A program made the position numbers and the translations under genes. A model generated the notes under the pieces. That model did no database searches. It was given only the letters and a program-made list of their open reading frames with translations, and had not been told where the DNA came from. From positions 27,714,001 through 27,778,000 of the forward strand of contig OZ249442.1 of assembly GCA_965235115.1 (NCBI GenBank): a stretch of 64,000 nt of DNA. The letters are read 5' to 3'. Of the stretch, positions 6,389 to 55,303 are shown one piece after another (position 1 is the first letter of the stretch; the number at the start of each line of letters is the position of its first letter). This stretch comes from Laetmonice hystrix. Taxonomy: Eukaryota.

Positions 6389-6996
6389 ACACCACCAGTC
6401 CACACGTGTCAGAGTGTTGTACAGGTTGTACTACGTTCACTCGGAGGTCAACCCCGACACCACCAGTCCACACGTGTCAGAGTGTTGTACAGGTTGTACT
6501 ACGTTCACTCGGAGGTCAACCCTGACACCACCAGTCCACACGTGTCAGAGTGTTGTACAGGTTGTACTACGTTCACTCGGAGGTCAACCCCGACACCACC
6601 AGTCCACACGTGTCAGAGTGTTGTACAGGTTGTACTACGTTCACTCGGAGGTCAACCCTGACACCACCAGTCCACACGTGTCAGAGTGTTGTACAGGTTG
6701 TACTACGTTCACTCGGAGGTCAACCCCGACACCACCAGTCCACACGTGTCAGAGTGTTGTACAGGTTGTACTACGTTCACTCGGAGGTCAACCCCGACAC
6801 CACCAGTCCACACGTGTCAGAGTGTTGTACAGGTTGCACTACGTTCACTCGGAGGTCAACCCTGACACCACCAGTCCACACGTGTCAGAGTGTTGTACAG
6901 GTTGTACTACGTTCACTCGGAGGTCAACCCTGACACCACCAGTCAACACGTGTGTTGTACAGGTTGTACTGCGTTTACTCGGAGGTCAACCCTGAC
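6389..6996. repeat. Minisatellite, 68-bp unit, ~9 copies, directly abutting the 39-bp array
   Basis: Unit caccaccagtccacacgtgtcagagtgttgtacaggttgtactacgttcactcggaggtcaaccc(c/t)ga. Confidence 0.96.
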
Positions 6997-26222: not shown

Positions 26223-27422
26223 TTAATCCGAAAGCGGGATCCATTCCGGGAGAAAGTGATCCGATGAAGAAAACGCTTTGGATAGTATCGATTGCGAATA
26301 GATTGGATGAGTGAAGTACACGACCTGCCCCCCTGCCAGCCAGGCGGCCCACCACCCAAACGTTCCTAGTGTGATGATTGAGTGGTTACATTTACAAAGG
26401 ACCGTAAAGTGGTCCTCGTAATCCATCTGACCGACCACAAATACATCTGACCCTTTTATATTCTCCTTGGACCACTCTGTGTCGTCGCTGACGATCAGGA
26501 AAATCGGCGATCTTACCCGTGATCGGTAGTATTTGAAAGCTCTTTGAAGATAATTCATACTGGGTGTTCTGTAATGTTTGTTTGTAAGAAGGTCTCCTCT
26601 ACGAACGTGTACACCAATAAAAGTAGGCGAGTCAACATTCTCGCTCCCGTTGTGCAAATACTTTGATGCTTCCTTGAGGGTTGCTTCAGCTTTGGCATTT
26701 AGGTGATTTTTGATCTGGAATTGTTCCCTGATCTCTTTAAAGCAACATTTGAAGTACTTCCATGTTTGAAAATATCCTCCCAGTTTGACGTCTGCGCAGG
26801 GCATGTCAAGGAACTCGGCACTGAAGCGAGCAAAATCTCGCTCCTCGATTACAGCGGTTCCTGACGGAGCGTAACCAGTTCTCAGTGAGAGGTTGAAAAC
26901 TCGGTGGAGTTTTTCAAAGGCAGGAGAAATGATAAGTGTACGGTTAGTCATCGCAGCCATTCCGATAAGCGAGGCAACCTGGAACAGTTGGTTGCCAAGC
27001 CTTCCGATGGGGTCGATATAAAGTTTGTAGCGATGTTGATGGTTTTGGCGCGCTCTTCGATCACATGATCTCTGAGGCATGTAGCGTAACCTTTGGAGCA
27101 TGATTCCTGCTTTCTTTGTGTTAATAATTATCGACGGCCGAGACCAATCTGTTGTGTCCGTTTTGACCTTGGTTATATCGTTTACTCTCCCTGCAGACCT
27201 ACCCGCTACTCCAGAAAATCGCAGATTCCGAGCGAGGCCGACGTCTACCTTTCTGAAATCATCCGTGTTTCTCCGTACAATAGGGAATTCATGCGGATAA
27301 TTAAACTGGTCATTAAATAATTGAGACAATTCAATGCCAAGTATGAAGAATGTGAAGAAGACAGAAACCGTAAGAATGCTCCATAACGAATACATGTTCC
27401 AGAACGTGCTCAGGAAGTCCAT
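26223..27422 (-). CDS. Alpha-1,2-fucosyltransferase (glycosyltransferase family 11, FUT1/FUT2-like), single coding exon, ~399 aa
   Basis: N-terminal TM anchor LWSILTVSVFFTFFILGI; GRLGNQLFQ; motif I FIGVHVRRGD; motif II FLIVSDDTEWSKENI; motif III CNHSIITLGTFGWWAAWLAGG. First in-frame ATG at 27422 (27395 is an alternative). Confidence 0.93.
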   Translation of the reverse strand: MDFLSTFWNMYSLWSILTVSVFFTFFILGIELSQLFNDQFNYPHEFPIVRRNTDDFRKVDVGLARNLRFSGVAGRSAGRVNDITKVKTDTTDWSRPSIIINTKKAGIMLQRLRYMPQRSCDRRARQNHQHRYKLYIDPIGRLGNQLFQVASLIGMAAMTNRTLIISPAFEKLHRVFNLSLRTGYAPSGTAVIEERDFARFSAEFLDMPCADVKLGGYFQTWKYFKCCFKEIREQFQIKNHLNAKAEATLKEASKYLHNGSENVDSPTFIGVHVRRGDLLTNKHYRTPSMNYLQRAFKYYRSRVRSPIFLIVSDDTEWSKENIKGSDVFVVGQMDYEDHFTVLCKCNHSIITLGTFGWWAAWLAGGQVVYFTHPIYSQSILSKAFSSSDHFLPEWIPLSD

Positions 27423-27839
27423 TGGCAGTGTAAGCACCTTTAGTTAACAATACATGTTACAGAACGTGTTCAGGAAGTCCATTGGCAGTGTAAGCACCTT
27501 TAGTTAACAATCTCGGCATGTAACTGAGAATAAAGTTGTCTGATGATGGAGACGACTGTCCATTGCCTCCGGATGGCATTCTGAAATCACAAAACGTACG
27601 ATTGGATTAGGTGACACAGCGACAGGATACGGAATGATTTTAATTGTACTGGGACAAAAGTCGTCATACAGGAATCTTGTCACACGCCCAGAGATGCCTA
27701 CTTCTTCCTTGCGTGTCATATTTATGGGGAGCGTTAAATTATGGACAAAAATAATGGTTTGAATATGCACAGATGAAATAGTTTTTAACTTAAAAGTAAC
27801 GTCGCCTCGGCGATATCCAATGATCATGAAATCTCAAAT

Positions 27840-30150: not shown

Positions 30151-30270
30151 GAATGCGTACAAAAGAAAGAGAATCCAACAATTTAACAGAAAAGTTACTT
30201 TCATGGAACTCTAAAGTTTTAAGAAGTTATCCTAGAATATTTTCTTTGAAAAAAAAAGATTGCGCCAAGC

Positions 30271-31746
30271 AGGACCTACCAATCAGGGTGTCATTGTCTG
30301 TCAGACTACCTGCCTAACAGGACCTACCAATCAGGGTGTCATTGTCTGTCAGACTACCTGCCCAACAGGACAAACCAATCAGGGTGTCATTGTCTGTCAG
30401 ACTACCTGCCCAACAGGACCTACCAATCAGGGTATCATTGTCTGTCAGACTACCTGCCCAACAGGACAAACCAATCAGGGTGTCATTGTCTGTCAGACTA
30501 CCTGCCCAACAGGACCTACCAATCAGGGTGTCATTGTCTGTCAGACTACCTGCCCAACAGGACCTACCAATCAGGGTGTCATTGTCTGTCAGACTACCTG
30601 CCCAACAGGACCTACCAATCAGGGTGTCATTGTCTGCCAGACTACCTGCCCAACAGGACCTACCAATCAGGGTGTCATTGTCTGTCAGACTACCTGCCCA
30701 GCAGGACCTACCAATCAGGGTGTCATTGTCTGTCAGACTACCTGCCCAACAGGACCTACCAATCAGGGTGTCATTGTCTGTCAGACTACCTGCCCAACAG
30801 GACCTACCAATCAGGGTGTCATTGTCTGTCAGACTACCTGCCCAACAGGACCTACCAATCAGGGTGTCATTGTCTGTCAGACTACCTGCCTAACAGGACC
30901 TACCAATCAGGGTGTCATTGTCTGCTAGACTCCCTGCCCAACAGGACCTACCAATCAGGGTGTCATTGTCTGCCAGACTCCCTGCCCAACAGGACCTACC
31001 AATCAGGGTGTCATTGTCTGCCAGACTACCTGCCCAACAGGACCTACCAATCAGGGTGTCATTGTCTGTCAGACTACCTGCCCAACAGGGCCTACCAATC
31101 AGGGTGTCATTGTCTGTCAGACTCCCTGCCCAACAGGACCTACCAATCAGGGTGTCATTGTCTGTCAGACTACCTGCCCAACAGGACAAACCAATCAGGG
31201 TGTCATTGTCTGTCAGACTACCTGCCCAACAGGACCTACCAATCAGGGTATCATTGTCTGTCAGACTACCTGCCCAACAGGACAAACCAATCAGGGTGTC
31301 ATTGTCTGTCAGACTACCTGCCCAACAGGACCTACCAATCAGGGTGTCATTGTCTGTCAGACTACCTGCCCAACAGGACCTACCAATCAGGGTGTCATTG
31401 TCTGTCAGACTACCTGCCCAACAGGACCTACCAATCAGGGTGTCATTGTCTGCCAGACTACCTGCCCAACAGGACCTACCAATCAGGGTGTCATTATCTG
31501 TCAGACTACCTGCCCAGCAGGACCTACCAATCAGGGTGTCATTGTCTGTCAGACTACCTGCCCAACAGGACCTACCAATCAGGGTGTCATTGTCTGTCAG
31601 ACTACCTGCCCAACAGGACCTACCAATCAGGGTGTCATTGTCTGTCAGACTACCTGCCCAACAGGACCTACCAATCAGGGTGTCATTGTCTGTCAGACTA
31701 CCTGCCCAACAGGACCTACCAATCAGGGTGTCATTGTCTGTCAGAC
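30271..31746. repeat. Minisatellite, 48-bp unit, ~30 copies
   Basis: Unit caggacctaccaatcagggtgtcattgtctgtcagactacctgcccaa. Confidence 0.97.
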
Positions 31747-32130
31747 TTGCCATTTCATACGAGCCATTTCTGGCTAGCCACGAAGTTGCAGCGCCCACTG
31801 TTTACAAACCCAGAAGAAAATTAAACTCTCTCTCTCTCTAAACACCAAGATGTCGATTACGATTGACCGAATATTTATTCCTTCATATATGTACAGTAAA
31901 GACAGATCTTGTCGGTTGTATTTTTAGATTCATTGATTGGTGCAATACAGGACTTTCAAATTGTGTTTCTGGTTCAACAACTGCTTGCCTCTAAGGTCGA
32001 CGCTGTGATGGTCCTGATCAGTACTGCTATTACAGTGATTGTGTTATATAGGTTCACACAACAAAACAACAACCTTACAAGTCATTAATCTTTTTTATAC
32101 AGAATCAATGGAAGTGTCGAATAAATGTCT

Positions 32131-33081
32131 TGGCCTGGTCAATGTGGTAGGACGCACAAAGGTAGGTCTGGTCAATGTGGTAGGACGCACAAAGGTAGGT
32201 CTGGTCAATGTGGTAGGACAGACAAAGGTAGGCCTGGTCAATGTGGTACGACAGACAAAGGTAGGCCTGGTCAATGTGGTAGGACGCACAAAGGTAGGCC
32301 TGGTCAATGTGGTAGGACAGACAAAGGTAGGTCTGGTCAATGTGGTAGGATAGACAAAGGTAGGCCTGGTCAATGTGGTAGGATAGACAAAGGTAGGCCT
32401 GGTCAATGTGGTAGGACGCACAAAGGTAGGTCTGGTCAATGTGGTAGTACAGACAAAGGTAGGCCTGGTCAATGTGGTAGGGCGACAAAGGTAGGCCTGG
32501 TCAATGTGGTAGGATAGACAAAGGTAGGCCTGGTCAATGTGGTAGGACAGACAAAGGTAGGCCTGGTCAATGTGGTAGGACAGACAGAGGTAGGCCTGGT
32601 CAATGTGGTAGGACAGACAGAGGTAGGCCTGGTCAATGTGGTAGGACAGACAAAGGTAGGCCTGGTCAATGTGGTAGGACAGACAAAGGTCGGGCTGGTC
32701 AATGTGGTAGGACAGACAAAGGTAGGCCTGGTCAATGTGGTAGGACAGACAGAGGTAGGCCTGGTCAATGTGGTAGGACAGACAAAGGTGGTCAATGTGG
32801 TAGGACAGACAAAGGTAGGCCTGGTCAATGTGGTAGGACAGACAGAGGTAGGCCTGGTCAATGTGGTAGGACAGACAAAGGTGGTCAATGTGGTAGGACA
32901 GACAAAGGTAGGCCTGGTCAATGTGGTAGGACAGACAAAGGTAGGCCTGGTCAATGTGGTAGGACAGACAAAGGTAGGCCTGGTCAATGTGGTAGGACAG
33001 ACAAAGGTAGGCCTGGTCAATGTGGTAGGACAGACAAAGGTAGGCCTGGTCAATGTGGTAGGACAGACAAAGGTAGGCCTG
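32131..33081. repeat. Minisatellite, 33-bp unit, ~29 copies, just downstream of the Kelch stop codon
   Basis: Unit ggtcaatgtggtaggacagacaaaggtaggcct; two 27-bp deletion units lie 93 bp apart. Confidence 0.96.
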
Positions 33082-33266
33082 ACCTCTGTGGAAGGCCAGG
33101 TAAAGGTAGGTAACTCTAGACATGATCATAAGCCATAAACTAATTAATGAACAATGAAGTCGCAACAAATTACATAATCTTGATTAGAAAATATATTCCT
33201 GAATGACTAACATAGATCTACGGCTAATATTTACCCCCGTATGACCGTCTAGAAATACATGATAAC

Positions 33267-34732
33267 TTAGGTCCCGGGGATCTGTGACATCGGTACATCT
33301 GTGACACAGACTGGGGAACAAGTGGCTTCAGCCGGGAGTCTGACGTCATCAGTCACAGTGATCTGACCCGTCACCATGTCAACCACTGTCACGTCACGTG
33401 TGATGTCAAACGTCCCGTCATCCTTATAGTAACCCCCTCCGACCACATAGAGCGTGTTACCCACGACCACGGACCCTGCCTGGAAGTGACCCCATGACAG
33501 TGTGGTCAGCACTGACCACTGCTGTGTGACCGTGTCAAACACCTCCACAGGCAGCACGTTACGACACTTACCGTCCACTATGTCCCTCCCCCCACACACC
33601 ACCACCCGACCCGGTACGGACCCCGCTGTGTGGGACTCTCGGCGGTTTATCATGGACGGAGCTGTGGTCCACTCCTCCCGTCCCTCGTCATACGTACACA
33701 CACTGGCGCTGATATCGCCATGCTCAACCCGGCCACCGGTGACGTACACCATCCCTCCACACACAGCAGCAGCGTGGGAGGACCGTGGGTGAGGCACGGC
33801 GGCCACCGGCGTCCATGTGAGGGACGCCAAGTCAAACCGCTCACATGACGAGAGGGGTTGGGATCCGTCAAGTCCCCCGACGGCCAGCACAGCCTGCCCA
33901 CTGGGCAAGGTGGAAACACTGAACCATCTCCGGGCAGTGGTCATGGGTGGCAGTTGGTGCCACGTGGACGTCAGGAACGATAACAGCCACGGACCCTTTC
34001 TTGTCTGGCGACTATTGAGTTTATCTTCCCCACCTATGATAATCAGGTACGGGCCAAAGGACACAGCTTGAGCACTTACAGTTCTGACTTGTAGAGGTGT
34101 GGTTAAAGTGATCCACGGTTGAAGCCGGCCGTCTGGGGACAGTGGGGCGACCATTATGGCGGGGATCGGAACACAACCCCCCACCACAGCCACACAGCGG
34201 GTCGTCAGGACCACATCTGTCGGGTTAACGAGACCCAGGTCAGACACTGCCCTCTCCACCAACACCTCCCCCACGTCAAGGGGTCCCTTAGATAACATGT
34301 CGCCTACACGATCAGTCAGTTTAAGTTCAGTAATCAGCTTGTTTATCTGTTCAACCCGAGTTTGTCTCGCTGCCACTCGAAACGTTTCTTTGAATCCTTC
34401 AACACTGAACATTGTGGCCACCTGGCGGACGGTATGAACGTTTTCAGGGGTCACGTTGAGTACACCGGTGTACAATACATCCAACATTACACCAAGTCCT
34501 ACCGCCGACGTGTTCTTAAGTCCCACCCTGTGGCCCTTAACCTTTGACAGTTGATCTTTGATGACCGGGGAGTAGGACTCGATGAATTGAGAATGGACGG
34601 GGAACTTGACGCCTTCCACTACCAGTTCCTTATCGAAACCTTTGCACTGAGATCGCTGTCCCTTGTAGTATTCCGTAGTTTTATTCAGGTGTCCCCGGGC
34701 TGTGCAACTCTGAGCTGTGCGTGTGGCCACTT
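33267..34732 (-). CDS. Terminal exon encoding a BTB/POZ domain plus six Kelch repeats (kelch-like protein, no BACK domain)
   Basis: BTB: DKELVVEGVKFPVHSQFIESYSP...LGVMLDVLYTGVLNVTPENVHTVRQVATMF. Six GG motifs (VVGG, IIGG, AVGG, VTGG, VCGG, VVGG) with downstream W residues. Phase-1 acceptor ttatttggacag|AA at 34732; TAA at 33267. Confidence 0.92.
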
Positions 34733-37700
34733 CTGTCCAAATAACAAAATGACGGGAAGGATCAGGAATTGTTTTCACAAAATGATTTGTATATTTATTG
34801 GTTGCAAAATGCTTAATCTTAAAAATTGTAAGTTGCACAATAAATTATTTTTTGGTAAATATAGTGACTGATGCAGACAGACTGATGCAGACACGTGTTT
34901 AAGTGTTGAAGAAAATATCAAAATAACATTACCATTATGACAAAATTAAGGGGGGGGGAGACTGAATTTAATTTAAGAGGAGGGGGCCCATTGGGAGCCC
35001 AGTGCTGACCCTAACGATCCTAAGCTTGGACTTACTTCTGACTGAGTGTAAAATGAATGGATATAGAGGCCCCGTTACACCTATACAACCATGTGGTCCA
35101 GCTTGGACTTACTTCTGACTGAGTGTAAAATGAATGGATATAGAGACCCCGTTACACCTATACAACCATGTGGTCCAGCTTGGACTGACTGCTGACTGAG
35201 TGTAAAATGAATGGATATAGAGACCCCGTTACACCTATACAACCATGTGGTCCAGCTTGGACTTACTTCTGACTGAGTATCCAAGCCGTTGGATGACCTG
35301 CGTCTGTCCGCTCACCCGGAGCACCTTCAGGAAGCCGTACACCTGGTCGAGTGGTTTCTGCTGGAGGAACTCTAGCAGCCGGAGGTTCCTCTCCCGTAAC
35401 GCCCTGTCTGGCTCTCGCTGGAAAAACAGTAATCATATATCTTAGGTACAATCATATCAGGGATAGGTCGGATATTTCCCTGAAATTGAATTGAAAAGGA
35501 CTTTAGTTTTTTTACCCACTTTGTTTTGGTCATTTTTAGTCATAAGTCACAGGAAAAGGATGATATCTGTACCTAATTTAAGGTATAAGACAAATACCTT
35601 ATCTGTGATGTGTTGACCAACATATTTCTAAAATATTTTTCAATACTTTCTGCGCATTAACGTACTTTACCTCATTTAAAGGGGGGGGGGCAATACGTCA
35701 TGAGGCAAAGACCTTCGCCCTCAAGTGTTGTAACGTTTCTCATACTAGTTCTCACCTTCACTCGTTCCGTTTCCGACGCGTTGAGTATAGTTTTACAAAG
35801 ACCTACGTCCAAGATGGCGTCTGGGTCGATGAGGTCCCGGATATCTGACGTTGCGTCCTGAAGGTCTTTCTTTACCAGCTGTTCAAGGGTCATTGAGTCC
35901 AGGATAGTTTGTGTCACAATCGCTGGGTCCTCCGTTTGGACATGCTGCTCTGAGGTGTCGGGTCCATCTGTCTGGATGACTTGGTCCGATGTGTCGGGTC
36001 CATCTGTCTGGATGACTTGGTCTGACGTGTCGGGTCCATCTGTAGGATGGAGGAGTTGGTCTGAGGTGTCAGGTCCATCTGGAGGATGGACAAGTTGGAC
36101 CGAGGTGTCGGGTCCATCTGGAGGATGGATGAGTTGGACTGAGGTGTCGGGTCCATCTGTCTGGCTGAAGCGATTAGAGGTTGATGCTCCTGCAATAAAA
36201 ATCCCTTTAGGGCCTATACTGTGACGTAGGTCCGTGCAATTGTACGTGTGCATGTTAGAGTTTGTAGGCCTATATCATTATGTACTGATTAATGCTGCCT
36301 ACTGTAGGCCGACCTAGTTAATGTATGTAGGCTACTAATGTAGGCCTAGTATGTACGCCAAGTGTATGTAAGCATGTACCTATGTGTGTAATGTCTATGT
36401 AGGCCTAATCCTATGTAGGGTATGTAAGCATGTACCTATGTGTGTATAGTAATGTGTATGTATAGGCCTAAGCATGTGCCACATAATATTATGTATCTCT
36501 CATCGTCTTACTCAGCGCTCTCACGTGGCCAGGTTCATCACTTAAAGCCAGCCGTTCCATCCTTCCCTTTATAAAAGAAATAGACGGAAACAAAAATAGA
36601 AGTAAAGTTCTGTTCAGGACAAAAAAACATTGAAAGATTAAAGCCGCTCCCCGATTAGGCCTATAATTCACATATACAGACTGGGAGAACCCGTGCCAGG
36701 AATGTCGTAAATTTCGCTGAAGCTGTTTCAGACAATATTACAAGCGGCCTATACTGCATGGCCCTCCAACCATGTTGCCCTTGATTGGCTAAATCCTCAT
36801 TTGGCTGATTGGCTAAGAAAAGCTAGCATTCCTGTTCGAGAGGCCCAACTCCCTGGCTGACACAGCAGTCTATTGGAGTTACGTCTCGACATAATCTCTT
36901 CACTCACCTGGAGTTCAGACACCTCGTCTCCAGACAGAACACCAAGGTCTGCCATCTTTGGTAAAAGTTGTTCAAACACCCTGAAATCGTCTGGTATCGT
37001 CACTGTAAGAACGGTTACACCAGAGACCTTATTCACAAAGCACACGCAAGACTTACGTGACCGCAAAACTATCATCCTCCAACTGTTTAATAATCGTTTT
37101 CGGTCCGCAAGTCTTGCGTGTGTTTTGTGAATAAGGTCCCAGGACAGTATTAACGGGATCCGATAGATGTCGCTGGTTGGTCTATGTAACTCGATCCGTG
37201 GGTGAATTAGGGGTTTACTGTGTTGTGCCATGTTGCAGGTCGTCTATTAAACCAACACGGCGAGAACAAAAAATAGCAAGAGTTCTTAATACCGATCACA
37301 CAGACGTGGGTGGACATACCAAAGCCTGGTCCTGCAATGCAACCAACTTCTCGACCAGCCCTGTATCTAACTGAGATCTTTGTAACTGAGATTCTAGGGG
37401 GAACGTTGAGGGAAAATTCTCTGTTTCGGGTCTCCGATCAGGCATCATGGCCCAATTTATGGGTAACTACTATATCCGACAAATACTGATAATATATTTC
37501 CACGGGTGGTGCAAGTTAGGTGACAGGTGGCGGGTTTACCACCAGGGGGCGGTACAGTCTCGTAGCCATAGGTAGGCCTAGCGGCTGGCGGATATAGAGT
37601 ATGCTTGCTTGCCTCCACATATCATGTCCAATTCGTGTTCACAATCTACCAGTAAGGTATACTCCCTTCTATATTCTAATTAATACCATTTTCTTTCCTA

Positions 37701-40700
37701 TTTCGTTTATGTTTTATTTACCAACAAATGGCTGGGGGAGAGTGTTTCACTCTATGTCCAACTGTCCCTAGGTCATCTGTTCTGGTCGTTTCTGTCCACC
37801 TCGAGTGAACACATGGCGGGAACAACTTCCGGTCACCATTTAATTTATCGAGTACGTTCGTTCGTTCGTTCGTTCGTGCGTGCGTGCGTACTTGGGTCCG
37901 TTCATTCACAGAGCATGTGCATGGGGTCTCCCAAACCATGAACAATCGGTCCGTCCTATTTCGGGGCTATAATTTCTTATATCAGTATTCGCAACATTTG
38001 TACCAGCGAAAATAGATTTCAAATATTGCATTGTTCTCGTGGAAATCGCGGATATTTCTGTCACGAATTTCGGAACATTGGTTGCGGACTCTACACTACA
38101 ACAACACAATGTTCAAACGATTGCAAATGGCGGCAATCTTTGTCTTGGCATGCATTCCAGCTAGTTTTTGTAATTTTTTCCACCATCAGGCCATTCCGGG
38201 GGCAACTTCACAGGTGCATGTCTAGCCTACAGTACCCATATAGGCTAGGATGTGTTAACAAAATCAATATAAGAAACATTCAATGTCATAAAGTACGTCA
38301 GTGGTGAGTAGCACTAGGTGAGCATAAATCTGAAGATTCCCGTCGATTTGGCGGATGATATACTCCCTTTACAATAACTTCAGAGCCCCTCAGAAGCGAC
38401 CTCTGTCGGGGAAAACAACGAAGGGCAAGACTCAGTAGTGCAGTAACTTACCGGCAGGTGGCAGGAGGGAAGCGACGTGTTCTCTACCAGTAACCATCAA
38501 AGAGTCTATGAGCTTGGCATAGTGCCACATTGACCTCCTTGACATCAGGTCAAAGAACAGGATTGATCGGGCATTTCCAGCAGGCTTCGCCTGAAACAAA
38601 ATACACACTAGAAAATCCCAGTTAAGATAAGATATATAGTTTATATAGTGCTAAAACTGTATGAAATACGGTAATTATTTGAAATAATTTTCTTGGACGG
38701 AGGTCGGGGGGGGGGGGGGTCAGACCTTGATCATACTTGGGGAAAATGTCACGACAGCTCCTACTAGGATAAGTTACCTTAACCTCCTCAGTGACAGAGA
38801 TGTTGAGGACCTCTTCCTTTTGTAAGTGATTCAGGAACTCATCGTTGATCCACAGGTTCTCCCTGGAAGCCACTCTCTGAGACATCAGACGCTGTCTAAT
38901 GTGGGATTGGAGAGGGTGGTCACGTAATGTGGCATCACGAGCCTGGAAACGGAACGAAAGGAGAGTGAGAGGGGGGCACCAGTCCACAGGGGCAGAACCT
39001 AAGGGGGATTCAGAATTACTCCCTCCACCAAAAGTCAAACAAAAGAAGAAATAATATCATTAAAATGTTACCTCCCACTCAGCCTTTGTGATTCCGATGT
39101 GTGCCATTGTTGGTTGGTATGAAATCTGAGCTGTGAACCAGGTTTGTAATCTGGAATCAAAGAGGATATATTCTTGACGTCGTCTAGGGGGCACAAATGC
39201 CTTTCAATAGCCAGACGCCCTCGGGAGGCTATATTTCATTATTCATAGGGCTTATAGCTAGGTTATCCCTATACTAGATCTAAATTGTTTCACAAACACT
39301 GCACTGTCTTCAAAAGCTTTACGCGTTCGTACTCATACGTGAAGTCTTCCCCAGAGAAACTCTCTCCAGGCCGGAGGGGAGGTGGGGGGGGGGGGTTGAT
39401 CTTGGTAGGGGCTACTATCTTGTAGGGACGTAGTGCTGACTGTTCTGACCAAAGACATTTCTACAAAGTGGTATTACCACACTACACTAACGCATACGAG
39501 TCTAGACCTAAAGAAACTACGTCTATGCCAACGATAGTGAAATACCACCTCATATGAGGCCAAATAGGGGCATCACTAAACAGCGAACTGGCGAAGTGAA
39601 CGAACTGAGATCGATTAGTTACGCCTCCAGGGGGGATTTCCGATGGGGACTGGCTATAATTGCCACCAACACGGAAACAGCCGACCTAAATTAGTTTGAC
39701 TAATTCAAACATGAAACAGTGTGTTTGGGTTAGGGTAAAGGTTAGGCCTAGAGTTAATGTTAATTTAGACATAGACACTAAAATAGGCACTAACTTCCGG
39801 CCGTGACGTCATACCTAAAGTCACGGGTTTGTAGCATGACGAATCGATCTCGGTTCGCCCAGTTCGCTGTTTATTAATAATATTGTCACAGACACAGAGA
39901 TTGACACTGTAGTGACACAGACCACCATAACACTTCATCATGTCTTTAAAGGTGCTATTCGTGAACAAAAATTCAATTTTTTTATTTTTAATTTTGTTGA
40001 CGTTTATGTGATCCCACCTATCATGGAAATAGATTCACAACAAAGGAAATCAAATTTTTTTATGGATAACGGCACAAATGGGGCTCTCTCAGAAGGCCTG
40101 TGGATACCCTGACAGGCCCCACCATAGGAAATGGCTCTATCTCGGTGCGCACCGAGATAGGTTTCAAATGCTGCACACAAACTAATAGAAGGTTTATCAG
40201 GCCAATGGTATCGGTAAGAATTTTTTCTAGTACTATGTGCACAATGTATGATAGGAGAAATGCCATTCTGTGCGAGACGAATAGCAACCGGTTTAAGTTA
40301 TCAAATGTATCTCCTTACCTGAGAAATAGCAGCAGTGATAGCTTGAATTAGGCTATAGGCCTACTGAACTCTGCGTTACTTCCGAGGCCTACACAACACC
40401 CTACGTGAGAAGTAGGGCACATAGATAATACTTTTTTCTAGTGCTCGATCTATCTGCTTGTTGGTCATTTGAACCAGTAGTCTCCAGAGTACGAGCATGC
40501 GCAGTTTGCCTGCTGGGTGTTGACTAAAGGCCCGGCCCCATTGGCCCAGGCTACCCGATTCCCTCCGACCCGATGGTCGCCGACCCAGGTAGGCCTACTG
40601 CCGACTAATGAGTCGGACTGAAATCACAAGGGTGGCCCAACATAACCGACTAGATGGTCGGACGTAGCCTACAGAAAACTTTGTTGAGCTGTGATTGGTT

Positions 40701-42276
40701 ATCTACGATCTACCCGACCATCAAGTCTAGTCGGAGTAGCCCCACATACGCGATGACAACGTCATGACCCAGACCATCGAGTCGGTAATCTTCAACATCT
40801 CATGATGACCGACCCGGTTTGATCGGGGATAAAACACCGGTCCTAAAGCCCGCCGCACACCTTCACGACTGATCTCACACATTCTCACGACTCTTGCGTT
40901 ACAACTGCCGCCGATTCCCGCCAAATGATCATGCGAACCTAGCGGATGCTTCAGGAATCTGTGCGGCAACGTCATGGATTCAAAATGGAAGAAGATAAAG
41001 CTGGCAATCGACACCATCGCATATTGGCGACTGATGCGACGTCACGGGCAAGAAATGGCTACGAAGACGCGAGTCTGGAAGAGTCTAGGTTAATATGTTA
41101 CATTTCCAGAAAGGCTATTTCGCAAATCTTGTCACTGAACTTAAGGAGAAAGATGCAATGACGTTCATATCCCGACGTCTTTGACAGAATCTTGTCGCTG
41201 ATAACCCCCCCCCCCCCCCCCCCGATCCAACGTAAAGACACTTTTCTACCGAAAGTGCATATCTCCAGTCGTCATGACGTGCCACGTGATCCTGCGGCGT
41301 GCTGTGATTGGTTGCGGCTGCCGATGACAGCTGACTGGTGCGGCTCCCGATTAACATTTTGAATCGGCTACGATTCTGCCCGACTGCAGTCATGAGGCAA
41401 CTCCCACCAGGTTTCCGACGTCGGCTCGGCTAAGATCGGCTCAAATCGCAAATGATAGCCTAATCGGCTAAAATCCAGACTAGGCGCGATGACCCCGGCC
41501 CCACATACCGACCCGATGGTCGGCGACCATCCCACCTTACCGAGTCAGGTGGCGAGTAGGCAGTCCCGAGTTAACTCATTAAAACTCATAGTAGATTGTA
41601 ACACTCGTCATATAGCTCGTAGGCCTACGTATTAGGCCTATAAAGCCGGCCACACCAAGAAAACTGGGTCAGTGGCAGAGACTGACCCGTCGGGACCAGT
41701 TTTATGGTCTAGGCCTATTAATTAACACCGACCCACCCTCATACAACCTTTATGTTAAAACAGGGCTATGTGCTTGTGCGCCCCAACACACCAAAAAACC
41801 TGACCTGCTAATCTTCACTATTTCATTTCAAAGTAGGAAAACCATATAAGTAGAAAGAACCATAAGTCGAAAAAAAAAAGTTTTACTGTAATTCTATTAT
41901 AATTAAAAAAGTGATAAAACTCATAAAAAGGATTAGGCTACAGGGTTCTCGCCAGAAATTTTCGACAGCGTAGTGGTCAAACTAAGGGCAGAGCCCTGGT
42001 TAGGGGTACAGGAGGGGCAAACCCCAAGCTCAGGTAATTTAGGCTATTTTAGAGCCTTATCTTGTGACATTTTACCGGTATTCCTGTGGGTTCTGTTGAA
42101 TTTAGACAAGTTTTTGCCGCTACGCTGGTCAAGAGACAATGTAGCGGCCTCAAGTCAAAGACAGTGTAGTGGCCTGTAGTGGCCAGTGTAGTGAATTGTG
42201 CATGTGACATGGGCCTGCACTCGGCTCACCCACGATTGACTCCGTCATATCTCGGCTGTACGACGAAGGTCGCCAT
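33267..42276 (-). CDS. Inferred multi-exon gene: tandem CARD-like (death-fold) domains plus BTB-Kelch
   Basis: Phase-compatible GT-AG exons: 42276-42230 (optional; ATG at 39107 is an alternative start), 39150-39072, 38942-38778, 38590-38452, [37393-37320, 37243-37057, 37002-36908, and an unresolved exon], 36189-35756, 35417-35267, 34732-33267. Exon pairs translate to CARD-like helices. Confidence 0.65.
35024..35278. repeat. Minisatellite, 77-bp unit, ~3.3 copies, overlapping a splice donor
   Basis: Units start at 35024, 35101, 35178 and 35255; the last one contains the exon end AGA A|gtaagt. Confidence 0.92.
35267..35417 (-). CDS. Exon: C-terminal half of a CARD-like domain
   Basis: ttttccag|REPDRALRERNLRLLEFLQQKPLDQVYGFLKVLRVSGQTQVIQRLGYSVR|gtaagt; phase 0 to phase 1, 151 nt. 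Confidence 0.72.
35756..36189 (-). CDS. Exon: DGPDTS repeat linker plus N-terminal half of a CARD-like domain
   Basis: ttattgcag|GA ... MTLEQLVKKDLQDATSDIRDLIDPDAILDVGLCKTILNASETERVK|gtgaga; phase 1 to phase 0, 434 nt, open throughout. Confidence 0.7.
36908..37002 (-). CDS. Exon: N-terminal half of a further CARD-like domain
   Basis: ttcttacag|TG ... TIPDDFRVFEQLLPKMADLGVLSGDEVSELQ|gtgagt; same phase-0 break point as the other N-halves. Confidence 0.55.
37539..37552 (+). promoter_or_regulatory. CTCF consensus match
   Basis: CCACCAGGGGGCGG fits CCRSYAGRKGGCRS exactly; sequence match only. Confidence 0.35.
38452..38942 (-). CDS. Two exons (38942-38778, 38590-38452) forming the first CARD-like domain
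   Basis: HIRQRLMSQRVASRENLWINDEFLNHLQKEEVLNISVTEEVK|AKPAGNARSILFFDLMSRRSMWHYAKLIDSLMVTGREHVASLLPP; canonical ttccag/gtaact and tttcag/gtaagt sites, phases 0/0/1. Confidence 0.75.
41065..41207 (+). mobile_element. PIF/Harbinger transposase N-terminal relic, inside a ~40526-41560 remnant with ccgacc/ggtcgg subrepeats
   Basis: RVWKSLG*..KGYFANLVTELKEKDAMTF / (frameshift) PDVFDRILSLITP resembles the Harbinger motif G.Y..L..EL...D...F..FLRM.P..FD.LL.LV.P. Confidence 0.6.
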
Positions 42277-53772: not shown

Positions 53773-55303
53773 CTACTTTCTACTTGACCTTTGCTTTGGC
53801 CTTCTACCTTGTTTTGCACCCATAAGGCTATTTGACTGATGTAATATTTGCTCTGTCACTGCCACCTTATCCTTGTGTTTCTTCATGTGCCAGTTGAGAG
53901 CATTTCGCTGGCGACAACTGTATTCACAGAACTCACATTTCAAAGGTTTCTCCCCAGTGTGAATCCTGGTGTGAACCTCAAGTGCATGACTTGTCTTGAA
54001 CTCCTTCCCACACGATTCACACAGATATAAACGCAAACCTTCATGCACCGAACTCATATGCTTGAAGAAATGTGTTCTGTTATACACATAAAAGTCACAA
54101 ATGGAACAGTGGAAGTATTTCACTCCCAAGTGGGACATTTCTATGTGCTTACGTACAATGCGTCTATTTCCAAAATATTGTTGACATATGGCACACTTCG
54201 TTTTCTCATGTGCATCAGACCTGTGCTGGTTGAAAGTTCTGTAAGTAGTAAAATGTTTGGAGCAATCCTGGCACTTGAAGTCTTGTCCCTCTACTTCAGC
54301 CCTATGCACTATTTGTAGGTGTTTACGAATATCTTCCCTAGGGAATCTCTGTCCACATATTCCACATGGGAGATAAACCTTGTTACGACTTGACACATCT
54401 CGTTTCATCACCTTGATGTGTTGACAGACAGGAGAACTCCTGTCCCACTCGTGCTGTCTCTCGAGGTGAAGGTGAATCTGGTATCGATGGATCACCTTGT
54501 ACGGACAGTTCAAACAACTAAACATTGTCTTTTCATGTTGTTCTTCCACGTGGAAGACAAACAATGACGGAATGGTACACATGAACGTACATTGGGTACA
54601 CACGTATTTGTCCCCTTTGTTTCCCCCTGGATTTGCTAATTTTCCAAGACCATGAGCCTCGGCTAGATGATTTGTGACTTCTTGAACTCTATCCTCAATC
54701 AATTCCTTCCACTCGTACCCACAGAAACTGCACTTCTTGACCTCTTGATCACCATGACAACTGAGGCTATGACCAACCATGGGCTGGTATTCATCAAACG
54801 TCTCCTCGCAAAAGTTACAAGGGAAAATCTCCATCTCAATGTTCTGTTTTGGTTCCTGAGGGAGTGGGGCATTGCTCTCAACCACCTCTTCTGCGAAATC
54901 AGCTTGGTTTCTCTTCACCTTCCATGAGAATCCAGGAAACCAACTAGGGTCATCGCCTTTCTCCTCTTCTCCTTCTTCTTCATCTTCATCATCTTCTTCT
55001 AGTTCTTCCTCTTCTTCTCCGTCTTCTTCTTCATTAACTGTTTCTTTTGATAGTGCAAGTTCACCATTAACTTCACTTGTTTGTGCTTCTTCTTTCACTT
55101 TGATCTCATCCAGTGGAAGCTGTATATCGAGAGACAACCTATCACTCCCCTTAGGTTGTATAATTATAGGTTCAGGATTATCTGGACTTGTTCCAGCCAG
55201 CTGCCCAGTCAGATGTTCTATAGGTGTCTCAGCATTACTGCGACTTTTCTTCCATCCGAATGTCGAGTGTACCATTACCATTTGTCCAGCCCCCTCTTCA
55301 TCA
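53773..55303 (-). CDS. Large terminal exon of the zinc-finger gene
   Basis: Open 1531 nt after ttttatgttacag|T; about ten CxxC..HxxxH units. Confidence 0.93.

Follow-up and report, generated by a model that had tools for sequence, protein, structure and literature searches.

Introduction

BTB-Kelch proteins of the KLHL/KBTBD type, among them KEAP1, KLHL2, KLHL3 and KLHL20 as well as the short KLHL42 and KBTBD13, are to our knowledge ubiquitin-ligase adaptors without death-fold domains. KEAP1 binds its substrate through the propeller face formed by the D-A and B-C loops, and KLHL42 and KBTBD13, which lack a canonical BACK domain, have been reported as Cul3 binders. The known CARD sensors, such as Apaf-1, NOD2 and RIG-I/MDA5, couple their CARDs to an NTPase and to LRR, WD40 or helicase modules. 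A further type is represented by expanded, positively selected recognition families of ubiquitin ligases, namely the MATH-BTB and F-box proteins of nematodes and plants, finTRIM of fish and TRIM5 of primates; the expanded MATH-BTB adaptor families provide a precedent for positive selection on the substrate face, and we know of no death-fold domain in any of these families.

Here we analyzed a 64,000-nt window of the Laetmonice hystrix genome (all positions below refer to this window, and all listed features lie on the minus strand), in which the original prediction had proposed tandem CARD-like domains spliced onto a BTB-Kelch protein. Full-text literature searches for a CARD plus BTB-Kelch architecture found no paper. 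The predicted protein resembles KLHL/KBTBD proteins in having a six-bladed Kelch propeller C-terminal to a long-form BTB, in a propeller sequence that is nearest to KLHL2, KLHL20 and KEAP1, and in a variable surface that corresponds to the D-A/B-C loop face. It differs from them in having two CARDs and a repeat linker ahead of the BTB, in lacking a detectable BACK or 3-box and an evident phi-x-E motif, and in belonging to a family of 24 copies, found in tandem arrays, whose predicted binding face is positively selected. As in Apaf-1, NOD2 and RIG-I/MDA5, the CARDs are N-terminal, their tandem arrangement being that of NOD2 and RIG-I, and the C-terminal repeat propeller would lend itself to recognising ligands, like that of Apaf-1. 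Unlike these sensors, it has no NACHT, NB-ARC or helicase NTPase, with a BTB in the oligomeriser position, and its putative sensor is Kelch rather than WD40 or LRR; it is a member of neither family. With MATH-BTB, F-box, finTRIM and TRIM5 proteins it shares a lineage-specific tandem expansion, and the combination of purifying selection at the scaffold-binding end with diversifying selection at the target-binding domain; unlike them, it has a death-fold, and its coupling to a ligase is putative.

Results and Discussion

A six-exon gene model

Six exons with canonical AG/GT sites can be joined on the minus strand into an open frame of 796 aa (39107-33267). The coding part of exon 1 (39072-39107) comprises the ATG at 39107-39105 plus 11 codons and is followed by a GT donor at 39071; six paralogs retain all 12 codons, this ATG included, together with the GTAA donor. 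Exon 2 (38778-38942; 165 nt, phase 0 to 0), which has 25 copies in the genome, encodes the N-terminal half of CARD1, and exon 3 (38452-38590; 139 nt, phase 0 to 1), whose length and phase are identical in all seven rebuilt paralogs, encodes the C-terminal half. Exon 4 (35756-36189; 434 nt, phase 1 to 0) contains a linker and the N-terminal half of CARD2. The linker is acidic, Ser/Thr-rich and composed of a 13-residue repeat, visible as a 39-nt period at 35949-36160, and the exon measures 278 to 680 nt in the different paralogs, its length always being 2 mod 3. The C-terminal half of CARD2 is encoded by exon 5 (35267-35417; 151 nt, phase 0 to 1). Exon 6 (33267-34732) begins at a phase-1 acceptor conserved across seven paralogs and encodes a short linker, the BTB, a helical spacer and the Kelch propeller up to the TAA stop at 33269-33267. 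A minisatellite lies 3' of the gene; its derivation from the C-terminal codons of the gene was considered and rejected for the window copy.

All of the small upstream exons that had been proposed were recovered with their AG acceptors and GT donors. The acceptor at 34732 was likewise found, and the GTG start at 34838, where the ORF track begins, is intronic, as the original prediction held. The span given for the locus (33267-42276) holds only in part: the gene extends over 33267-39107, so the upper bound was about 3 kb too generous. On the 5' side of exon 1, a conserved block reaches about 39160-39230, and conservation among paralogs ends at 39163-39231; nothing homologous or conserved was found from about 39230 to 42276, and 39108-42276 is not shown to be part of the gene.

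A 77-nt tandem repeat (3.3 copies, 35023-35278) begins within the last 12 nt of exon 5 and re-creates the exon 5 donor motif three further times in intron 5. Genome-wide patterns across the exon 2/3 and 5/6 junctions, with up to three mismatches allowed, revealed no retrocopies. The sequencing runs containing the locus are three in number, of unrecorded type and from one study; they carry exons and introns alike and are thus presumably DNA.

A gene family with a shared architecture

The genome contains 24 BTB-Kelch exons of this type, three on contig 7 and the rest on contigs 29, 1, 20 and 21, with contig 29 carrying a tandem array of 17 copies and one further copy at 12.0 Mb. Every one of them has a first CARD exon upstream on the same strand, 2.1-10.5 kb away. 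Full reconstruction covers seven of the 24 loci, and these rebuilt paralogs (50-85% identical) have open frames of 704-891 aa and share the same phases, and each of their junctions is GT-AG. On the strength of this paralog comparison, from which splicing is deduced, the predicted six-exon CARD-CARD-BTB-Kelch gene is real and intact. Its 796-aa product is predicted to be cytosolic, with the order N-terminal peptide, CARD1, repeat linker, CARD2, BTB, 59-residue spacer and Kelch.

The constancy of the arrangement also bears on whether the locus might instead comprise two adjacent genes that are always co-duplicated, a CARD-only adaptor (exons 1-5) and a BTB-Kelch gene. The 35267/34732 junction is not found in RNA, since no RNA run contains the locus, and read-through past the exon 5 donor would end at a stop about 10 codons further on, which makes an unspliced CARD-only product conceivable. 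However, exon 6 has a conserved phase-1 acceptor and no in-frame Met between that acceptor and the BTB, nor is any Met conserved there in the seven paralogs. Exons 5 and 3 end in matching phase 1 in every paralog, and order, strand and spacing are the same at 24/24 loci despite identity down to about 50%. We consider two separate genes quite unlikely, and the paralog comparison, together with the profile tests described below, strongly supports the proposed joining of the CARDs to the BTB-Kelch exon.

Identity of the CARD modules

Pfam gave no match for single half-CARD exons, as is expected of half domains. The CARD assignment of the joined peptides rests on profiles built in this analysis, namely a CARD HMM made from 19 CARDs of the same genome that pass the Pfam cut-off and Death and DED HMMs made likewise. 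CARD1 and CARD2, the two complete pairs of the original prediction, scored 28.0 and 24.9 bits against the CARD HMM, and none of 4000 shuffled peptides exceeded 11.2 bits. Across the rebuilt paralogs, all CARD modules reached 18-39 bits with the CARD HMM and no more than 7.2 bits with the Death and DED HMMs. Profile-profile alignment with hhalign placed exons 2+3 on the CARD profile at 96.4% (E 1.3e-9, 78/80 positions) and exons 4+5 at 96.5% (E 7.7e-10, 73/80 positions), while the values for other profiles were 7-39% (Death) and below 2% (DED). A search of a 1.84-billion-protein library with the exon 2 family profile retrieved a 47-aa protein, P0012 (E 1.5e-5), which matches positions 1-40 of Pfam CARD (PF00619) with 27.0 bits at a cut-off of 23.9; among PDB sequences, the same profile gave only a chance match to Hfq (E 0.5). 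It is strongly supported by these profiles that the predicted peptides are CARD-like and nearer to CARD than to Death or DED.

A probable alternative exon and phase-symmetric cassettes

The original prediction also listed a further CARD N-half at 37002-36908. This exon, designated exon 3b (36908-37002; 95 nt, AG/GT, phase 1 to 0), encodes a short CARD N-half and was found in all seven paralogs with dN/dS of 0.07-0.36 (dS being saturated). When paired with exon 5, it scores 20.9-33.1 bits against the CARD HMM and aligns to CARD by hhalign at 96.7%. The claim survives as a conserved coding exon but not as an additional exon placed directly before exon 4. The frame is open without exon 3b and broken when it directly precedes the acceptor at 36189; exon 4 is then read in a frame that runs into a stop at 35914. 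Most likely, then, exon 3b replaces exon 4. In one paralog (C1), no exon 4 match was found, and its model uses exon 3b in frame. Exon 3b is thus probably a conserved coding exon that would serve as an alternative to exon 4 and pair with exon 5. Both exons run from phase 1 to 0 and both are 2 mod 3 in length, as would be expected if they were mutually exclusive and swapped the N-half of CARD2.

A 55-nt candidate mini-exon (36512-36566), with a good acceptor and a GTAAG donor, was considered as a frame restorer between exons 3b and 4 and rejected as doubtful. It is restricted to three close chromosome-7 copies, the differences among these are mostly non-synonymous, and the CARD score of exon 3b plus the mini-exon is 4.4 bits.

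Together, exons 4 and 5 make up a cassette of phase 1-1, and one paralog, in which this cassette is duplicated, would have three CARDs. The exon phases allow several predicted in-frame forms.

The BTB domain and the question of Cul3

As had been proposed, Pfam assigns BTB and Kelch to the 3' exon. The BTB/POZ domain (34383-34664, residues about 332-425) matches PF00651 with 39.6 bits (cut-off 20.5), and PF00651 is present in 12/12 paralogs. In searches of the exon pieces and exon 6, Pfam yielded BTB and Kelch only, with no NTPase (NACHT, NB-ARC or DExD/H helicase), and the CARDs, repeat linker, BTB and Kelch between them cover the entire protein. In the AF2 model of exon 6, residues 1-151, which include the BTB, have pLDDT below 40 and are unusable; a complex prediction of the BTB homodimer scored 0.00, which is evidence neither for nor against.

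KLHL/KBTBD adaptors are characterised by the combination of BTB and Kelch, and the protein could accordingly be a substrate adaptor of a Cul3-RING ligase, whose BTB would bind Cul3 and whose Kelch face would pick substrates, the CARDs docking the ligase onto CARD platforms (tuning or terminating them) or being regulatory. Several features of the region argue against this alternative. BACK (PF07707) was found in 0/12 copies at E up to 10, with no detectable 3-box. The segment from the BTB to the first propeller strand is helical and has 59 residues, compared with the 127 residues of the KLHL3 BACK (PMC3616122). The best solved relative of the BTB is that of ZBTB17/Miz-1 (E 8.7e-9), which is of the transcription-factor rather than the KLHL type, and PDB alignments of the region end where the BTB ends. 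The alpha3/beta4 loop aligns without gaps to its short counterpart in Miz-1; the window copy has no Glu in this loop, and the paralogs have no conserved one. In this comparison with Miz-1, phi-x-E is not evident. In KLHL3, the E85A mutation abolishes Cul3 binding (PMC3616122).

The Kelch propeller

The Kelch region (33291-34205, residues about 485-789; Kelch_1 E 7.9e-31) contains five stretches matched by Pfam Kelch_1. AF2 models it as 24 strands forming six four-stranded blades, with pLDDT of about 85-95. The nearest solved propellers are those of KLHL2, KLHL20 and KEAP1, and the nearest ESM-Atlas clusters are KLHL42, KLHL22, KLHL13 and KBTBD13; these neighbours speak for the Cul3 adaptor. 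A word-indexed protein search with exon 6 retrieved distant Kelch proteins only (37% identical at most), and the searched database evidently does not contain its lineage. Contig 30 contains more distant Kelch ORFs that have Kelch domains only and no BTB, and they thus give no clue to how the fusion arose. Within the propeller, the D-A and B-C loops are hypervariable.

Selection differs between domains

Among the domains, omega was 0.21 for CARD1 (LRT against 1: p 2e-22), 0.43 for CARD2 and 0.55 for the BTB. For the Kelch region, where loop classes were taken from the predicted structure, the top-face loops (D-A and B-C) gave 1.59-1.68, significantly above 1 (LRT p 0.001-0.005), while the bottom loops gave 0.58, the strands 0.79 and the non-top remainder in a first partition 0.52. 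Parsimony counts of nonsynonymous to synonymous changes were 236:55 on the top face and 66:52 elsewhere (Fisher p 4e-7). Synonymous sites have diverged less in the Kelch region than in the 5' exons, which hints at gene conversion, a process able to bias omega. As judged from these modelled loop classes, the putative ligand-binding face of the propeller shows positive selection of the kind seen in immune receptor families, and CARD1, not the BTB, is the most constrained part of the predicted protein. The signalling end is conserved and the sensing end variable, as in CARD sensors.

The overall omega of Kelch is near 1 among recent copies and two of the 24 loci look disrupted, as might be the case in a decaying or non-functional array of pseudogenes or of exons carried along by segmental duplication. 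Such an array is nevertheless very improbable, given that the frame is open in each of the seven rebuilt genes and in each of the 12 3' exons compared, and that CARD1 and the BTB are constrained; the strands and bottom loops are also constrained and only the top-face loops exceed 1, a structured pattern rather than one of neutral decay.

Positive selection on a substrate face would fit a ligase adaptor in an arms race with pathogens equally well; the position of the strongest constraint, in CARD1 and not in the BTB, speaks against it. With this evidence and that from the BTB region, we regard the Cul3 adaptor as a serious but rather unlikely alternative.

Proposed function

Slightly favoured overall is a cytosolic recognition family in which a variable Kelch sensor, a BTB oligomeriser and a CARD output would be combined, a mechanism that we infer from the domain order and selection. 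This sensor reading draws its advantage from the positive selection on the Kelch face, the conserved CARD1, the lack of BACK in 12/12 copies and the absence of an evident phi-x-E. The top face of the propeller (D-A and B-C loops) would bind fast-changing protein targets, probably derived from pathogens or other non-self sources; the BTB would make the protein dimeric or oligomeric; and CARD1 would contact a CARD-bearing caspase or adaptor homotypically, so that target binding could produce a proximity-induced death or inflammatory signal. The BTB would thereby stand in for the NTPase of the known CARD sensors, and Kelch for their WD40, LRR or helicase modules. A conserved CARD together with a diversifying Kelch pocket is the selection pattern expected of a recognition family, and the fusion would directly and physically link death-fold signalling to BTB-Kelch target selection. 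If so, a 24-member family of CARD + BTB-Kelch fusions would be a third way in which animals build intracellular recognition proteins. The junctions, domain boundaries and hypervariable loops are now defined as a concrete set for testing.

More tentatively, and with less than even confidence, the family may constitute an undescribed class of animal cytosolic immune receptors, with a BTB-oligomerised hypervariable Kelch sensor and tandem CARD output. Its diversity would come from the 17-gene array, from duplicable CARD cassettes (three CARDs in one copy) and from the mutually exclusive exons 3b/4. Phase-symmetric half-domain exons of this kind would offer a way for CARDs to be added, lost or swapped.

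Gene structure

In the source DNA (contig 7 of the 627-Mb genome assembly G000, 27714001-27778000), the exons and splice sites of the original prediction were recovered on the minus strand, with AG and GT dinucleotides at each proposed base. Exon 2 (38942-38778, 165 nt), exon 3 (38590-38452, 139 nt), exon 3b (37002-36908, 95 nt), exon 4 (36189-35756, 434 nt) and exon 5 (35417-35267, 151 nt) each have canonical AG/GT splice sites. They are followed on the same strand by exon 6, which runs from an AG acceptor at 34732 to a TAA stop codon at 33269-33267 and encodes BTB and Kelch domains. The start assigned to the BTB-Kelch protein by the ORF track (34838) is indeed intronic, and the stretch from the acceptor to the BTB domain contains no Met. 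Instead, a block of about 110 nt upstream of 38942 is kept among paralogs and contains the coding part of exon 1 (39107-39072, minus strand). There, an ATG in favourable context opens a run of 12 codons that leads to a GTAA donor, and all these elements are retained in six copies. When the exons are joined without the 95-nt exon 3b, a single open frame is obtained, and the coding sequence including exon 1 is 2388 nt long (796 aa). The gene was originally proposed to span 33267-42276, which holds as far as exon 1 (39107). Since similarity among paralogs stops at 39163-39231 and no further pieces of the protein were found elsewhere in the window, the remainder (39108-42276) is without support as part of the gene.

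Two kinds of repeats were observed in and next to the gene. A 77-nt tandem repeat at 35023-35278 on the minus strand (3.3 copies, 97% identical) starts within the final 12 nt of exon 5 and copies the exon end and its GTAAGT donor three more times within intron 5. These additional sites may serve as decoys or as cryptic donors, and their use would shift the frame. Directly 3' of the stop codon are large minisatellites at 32132-33110 (33 nt x 30) and 30265-31747 (48 nt x 31); the C-terminal codons of the gene are not the source of the 33-nt unit.

Identification of the CARD domains

Single half-domain exons had no match in Pfam. G000 contains at least 55 Pfam-CARD matches, 19 non-redundant ones of which were used to build a local CARD HMM. 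The joined peptides of the window scored 28.0 bits (CARD1, exons 2 and 3, residues about 13-113) and 24.9 bits (CARD2, exons 4 and 5, residues about 199-308) against this model, the top score among 4000 shuffled peptides being 11.2 bits, and all CARD modules across all rebuilt paralogs scored 18-39 bits. Death and DED HMMs built in the same way from G000 domains gave at most 7 bits with the CARD modules. In profile-profile comparisons, CARD1 matched CARD at 96.4% (E 1.3e-9, 78 of 80 positions) and CARD2 at 96.5% (E 7.7e-10), with values of 7-39% for Death and under 2% for DED. Together, these matches and the failure of Death and DED argue for the proposed CARD-like nature of the joined peptides.

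The intron site is identical in CARD1 and CARD2, directly past the N-terminal half of the domain. In an independent test, a library of 1.84 billion proteins, which is without this animal lineage, was queried with the exon-2 profile (alignment A2), and four proteins were obtained at E <= 0.001. The sole interpretable match was P0012 (E 1.5e-5), a 47-aa CARD N-half ORF from a metagenome or another genome, which covers positions 1-40 of the Pfam CARD profile with 27.0 bits (cut-off 23.9). It ends just past 'IK', where the CARD intron of the gene family sits, suggesting that this intron position may be old and common to other CARD genes.

A family of CARD-BTB-Kelch genes

A total of 24 copies of the BTB-Kelch exon were found in G000: three on contig 7, 17 in a tandem array on contig 29 (6.64-7.69 Mb) plus one at 12.0 Mb, one each on contigs 20 and 21, and two on contig 1. 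The first CARD exon is present in 25 copies. For each of the 24 BTB-Kelch exons, a CARD exon lies 2.1-10.5 kb upstream (median 5.3 kb) on the same strand. Seven genes, with identity to the window gene from 85% down to about 50%, were completely rebuilt; they have GT-AG at all junctions, identical phases and unbroken frames, and encode 704-891 aa. Throughout, exons 3 and 5 end in phase 1, and exon 6 starts in phase 1 without a conserved initiator. In codon models, omega was 0.21 for CARD1 (LRT against 1: p 2e-22) and 0.43 for CARD2 (LRT p 2e-5), values that show, at the level of codon substitution, upstream exons that are coding and under constraint. A CARD-only gene next to a separate BTB-Kelch gene is therefore unlikely, given the co-oriented CARD exon at 24 of 24 loci, the matching phases of exons 3 and 5 with exon 6, the intact frames, the constrained upstream exons and the missing initiator. 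A search for sequencing runs found no RNA run that covers the locus. As judged from this genome comparison, the order, strand, phases and open frames kept in paralogs support the predicted joining of the CARD exons to the BTB-Kelch exon.

Exon 3b and CARD cassettes

Exon 3b, initially described as a further N-half, was found in seven of seven paralogs, and its dN/dS of 0.07-0.36 (dS saturated) indicates a genuine coding exon. Joined to exon 5, it scored 20.9-33.1 bits with the CARD HMM and 96.7% by hhalign. Its identity as a coding CARD N-half is thus retained; what fails is direct joining before exon 4, as placing it immediately before 36189 breaks the frame. Both exons run from phase 1 to 0 with a length of 2 mod 3, and inclusion of both or neither causes a frameshift, as is characteristic of mutually exclusive exons. 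We infer that 3b and 4 may be alternatives that exchange the N-half of CARD2. No match to exon 4 was found in paralog C1, whose model using 3b stays in frame. A mini-exon at 36566-36512 (55 nt) is a poorly supported candidate bridge between 3b and exon 4.

Exons 4 and 5 form a phase 1-1 cassette. In paralog C29a (contig 29, 7674996-7683772), this cassette is tandemly duplicated, so that the intact protein of 891 aa carries three CARDs. Direct splicing of exon 3 to exon 6 would likewise keep the frame.

Selection on the Kelch propeller

Exon 6 matches Pfam BTB (PF00651, 39.6 bits) and Kelch_1 (E 7.9e-31). The AF2 model of its product contains a six-bladed propeller (pLDDT 85-95), with KLHL2, KLHL20 and KEAP1 as the nearest solved structures; the BTB part has pLDDT below 40 and is unusable. 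Among twelve exon-6 sequences, pairwise dN/dS was approximately 0.36 for BTB and 0.95 for Kelch, and variable sites concentrate after each GG (B-C loops) and right before each A strand (D-A loops). Parsimony counts on the ML tree gave a dN/dS of 1.45 for these loops (236 non-synonymous and 55 synonymous changes) versus 0.47 for the rest (Fisher p 4e-7). In the first ML GY94 partition, the top face formed by these loops had an omega of 1.68, significantly above 1 (LRT p 0.001); omega was 0.52 in the remaining propeller and 0.55 in the BTB domain. With strictly DSSP-defined loops, the values were 1.59 for the top face (p 0.005), 0.58 for bottom loops and 0.79 for strands. The loop assignments rest on the predicted structure. 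Synonymous divergence between the window gene and contig-29 copies, for the same gene pairs, was about 0.17 in Kelch, 0.45 in BTB and 0.68 in CARD1. Compared with the 5' exons, synonymous sites in Kelch have diverged less, which points to gene conversion or to interchromosomal exchange of the 3' region and is a caveat on the Kelch omega.

The contig-29 array also has decaying members, namely an orphan CARD1 exon (7692770-7692928) with no BTB-Kelch exon downstream, and two BTB-Kelch exons each split in two matches (7338716-7340177 and 7502709-7508632), one resembling a frameshift and the other an insertion of about 4.4 kb. Decay is an unlikely account of the array itself, given the constraint on CARD1 and CARD2 and a selection pattern that differs by propeller region.

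Possible function

Beyond the exon anatomy, domain identities, family expansion and selection pattern demonstrated here, we propose that the variable Kelch face would bind fast-evolving targets, the BTB domain would make the protein oligomeric, and the conserved CARD1 would recruit a caspase or an adaptor bearing a CARD. Apaf-1, NOD2 and RIG-I follow a similar logic, but the protein has no NTPase and thus falls outside these families. The chief alternative is a Cul3 adaptor through which ubiquitination would reach CARD platforms or pathogen proteins. KLHL3 contacts Cul3 through the first BACK hairpin (3-box) and the phi-x-E motif M83-S84-E85, and E85A abolishes binding (PMC3616122). BACK comprises 127 residues in KLHL3, whereas the BTB-to-Kelch spacer here has 59 residues, and no BACK domain was detected in any of 12 copies at thresholds up to E 10. 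Among solved BTB domains, that of ZBTB17/Miz-1 is nearest (E 8.7e-9), with KBTBD2, gigaxonin and KLHL3 next; the loop matching the KLHL3 phi-x-E site aligns with the short loop of Miz-1 without gaps, and no Glu is evident in it, the BTB model being of low confidence. On the other hand, ESM-Atlas neighbours include KLHL42 and KBTBD13, which lack a canonical BACK domain yet are reported to bind Cul3, so that Cul3 coupling is unsupported here yet possible. The roles of CARD sensor and Cul3 adaptor are not mutually exclusive.

Full-text literature searches for this architecture yielded no description of a CARD-BTB-Kelch protein, and the protein libraries searched are without this animal lineage. 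As far as these searches show, the combination of known domains is new, and it carries a receptor-like evolutionary signature.

Neighbouring genes and other CARD loci

The window also contains a single-exon, fucosyltransferase-like glycosyltransferase family-11 ORF (26226-27437, minus strand; E 4.6e-42), a C2H2 zinc-finger ORF (53776-55281, minus strand) and a nuclear-receptor zinc finger fragment (6414-6992, plus strand); no immune function is evident among these three. Elsewhere in the genome, thirteen near-identical CARD ORFs (L015-L026 and L029; 87-194 aa, Pfam CARD 32-39 bits) are spread across six chromosomes (contigs 2, 3, 5, 8, 11 and 12), and this CARD looks like the cargo of a repeat or mobile element that was active recently. 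Moreover, a cluster of about 20 weak matches to CARD lies at 16.9-22.4 Mb of contig 19; they score 25-27 bits, and most are in open frames of 104-128 aa. This second CARD family has also expanded and has no relation to the CARD-BTB-Kelch family.
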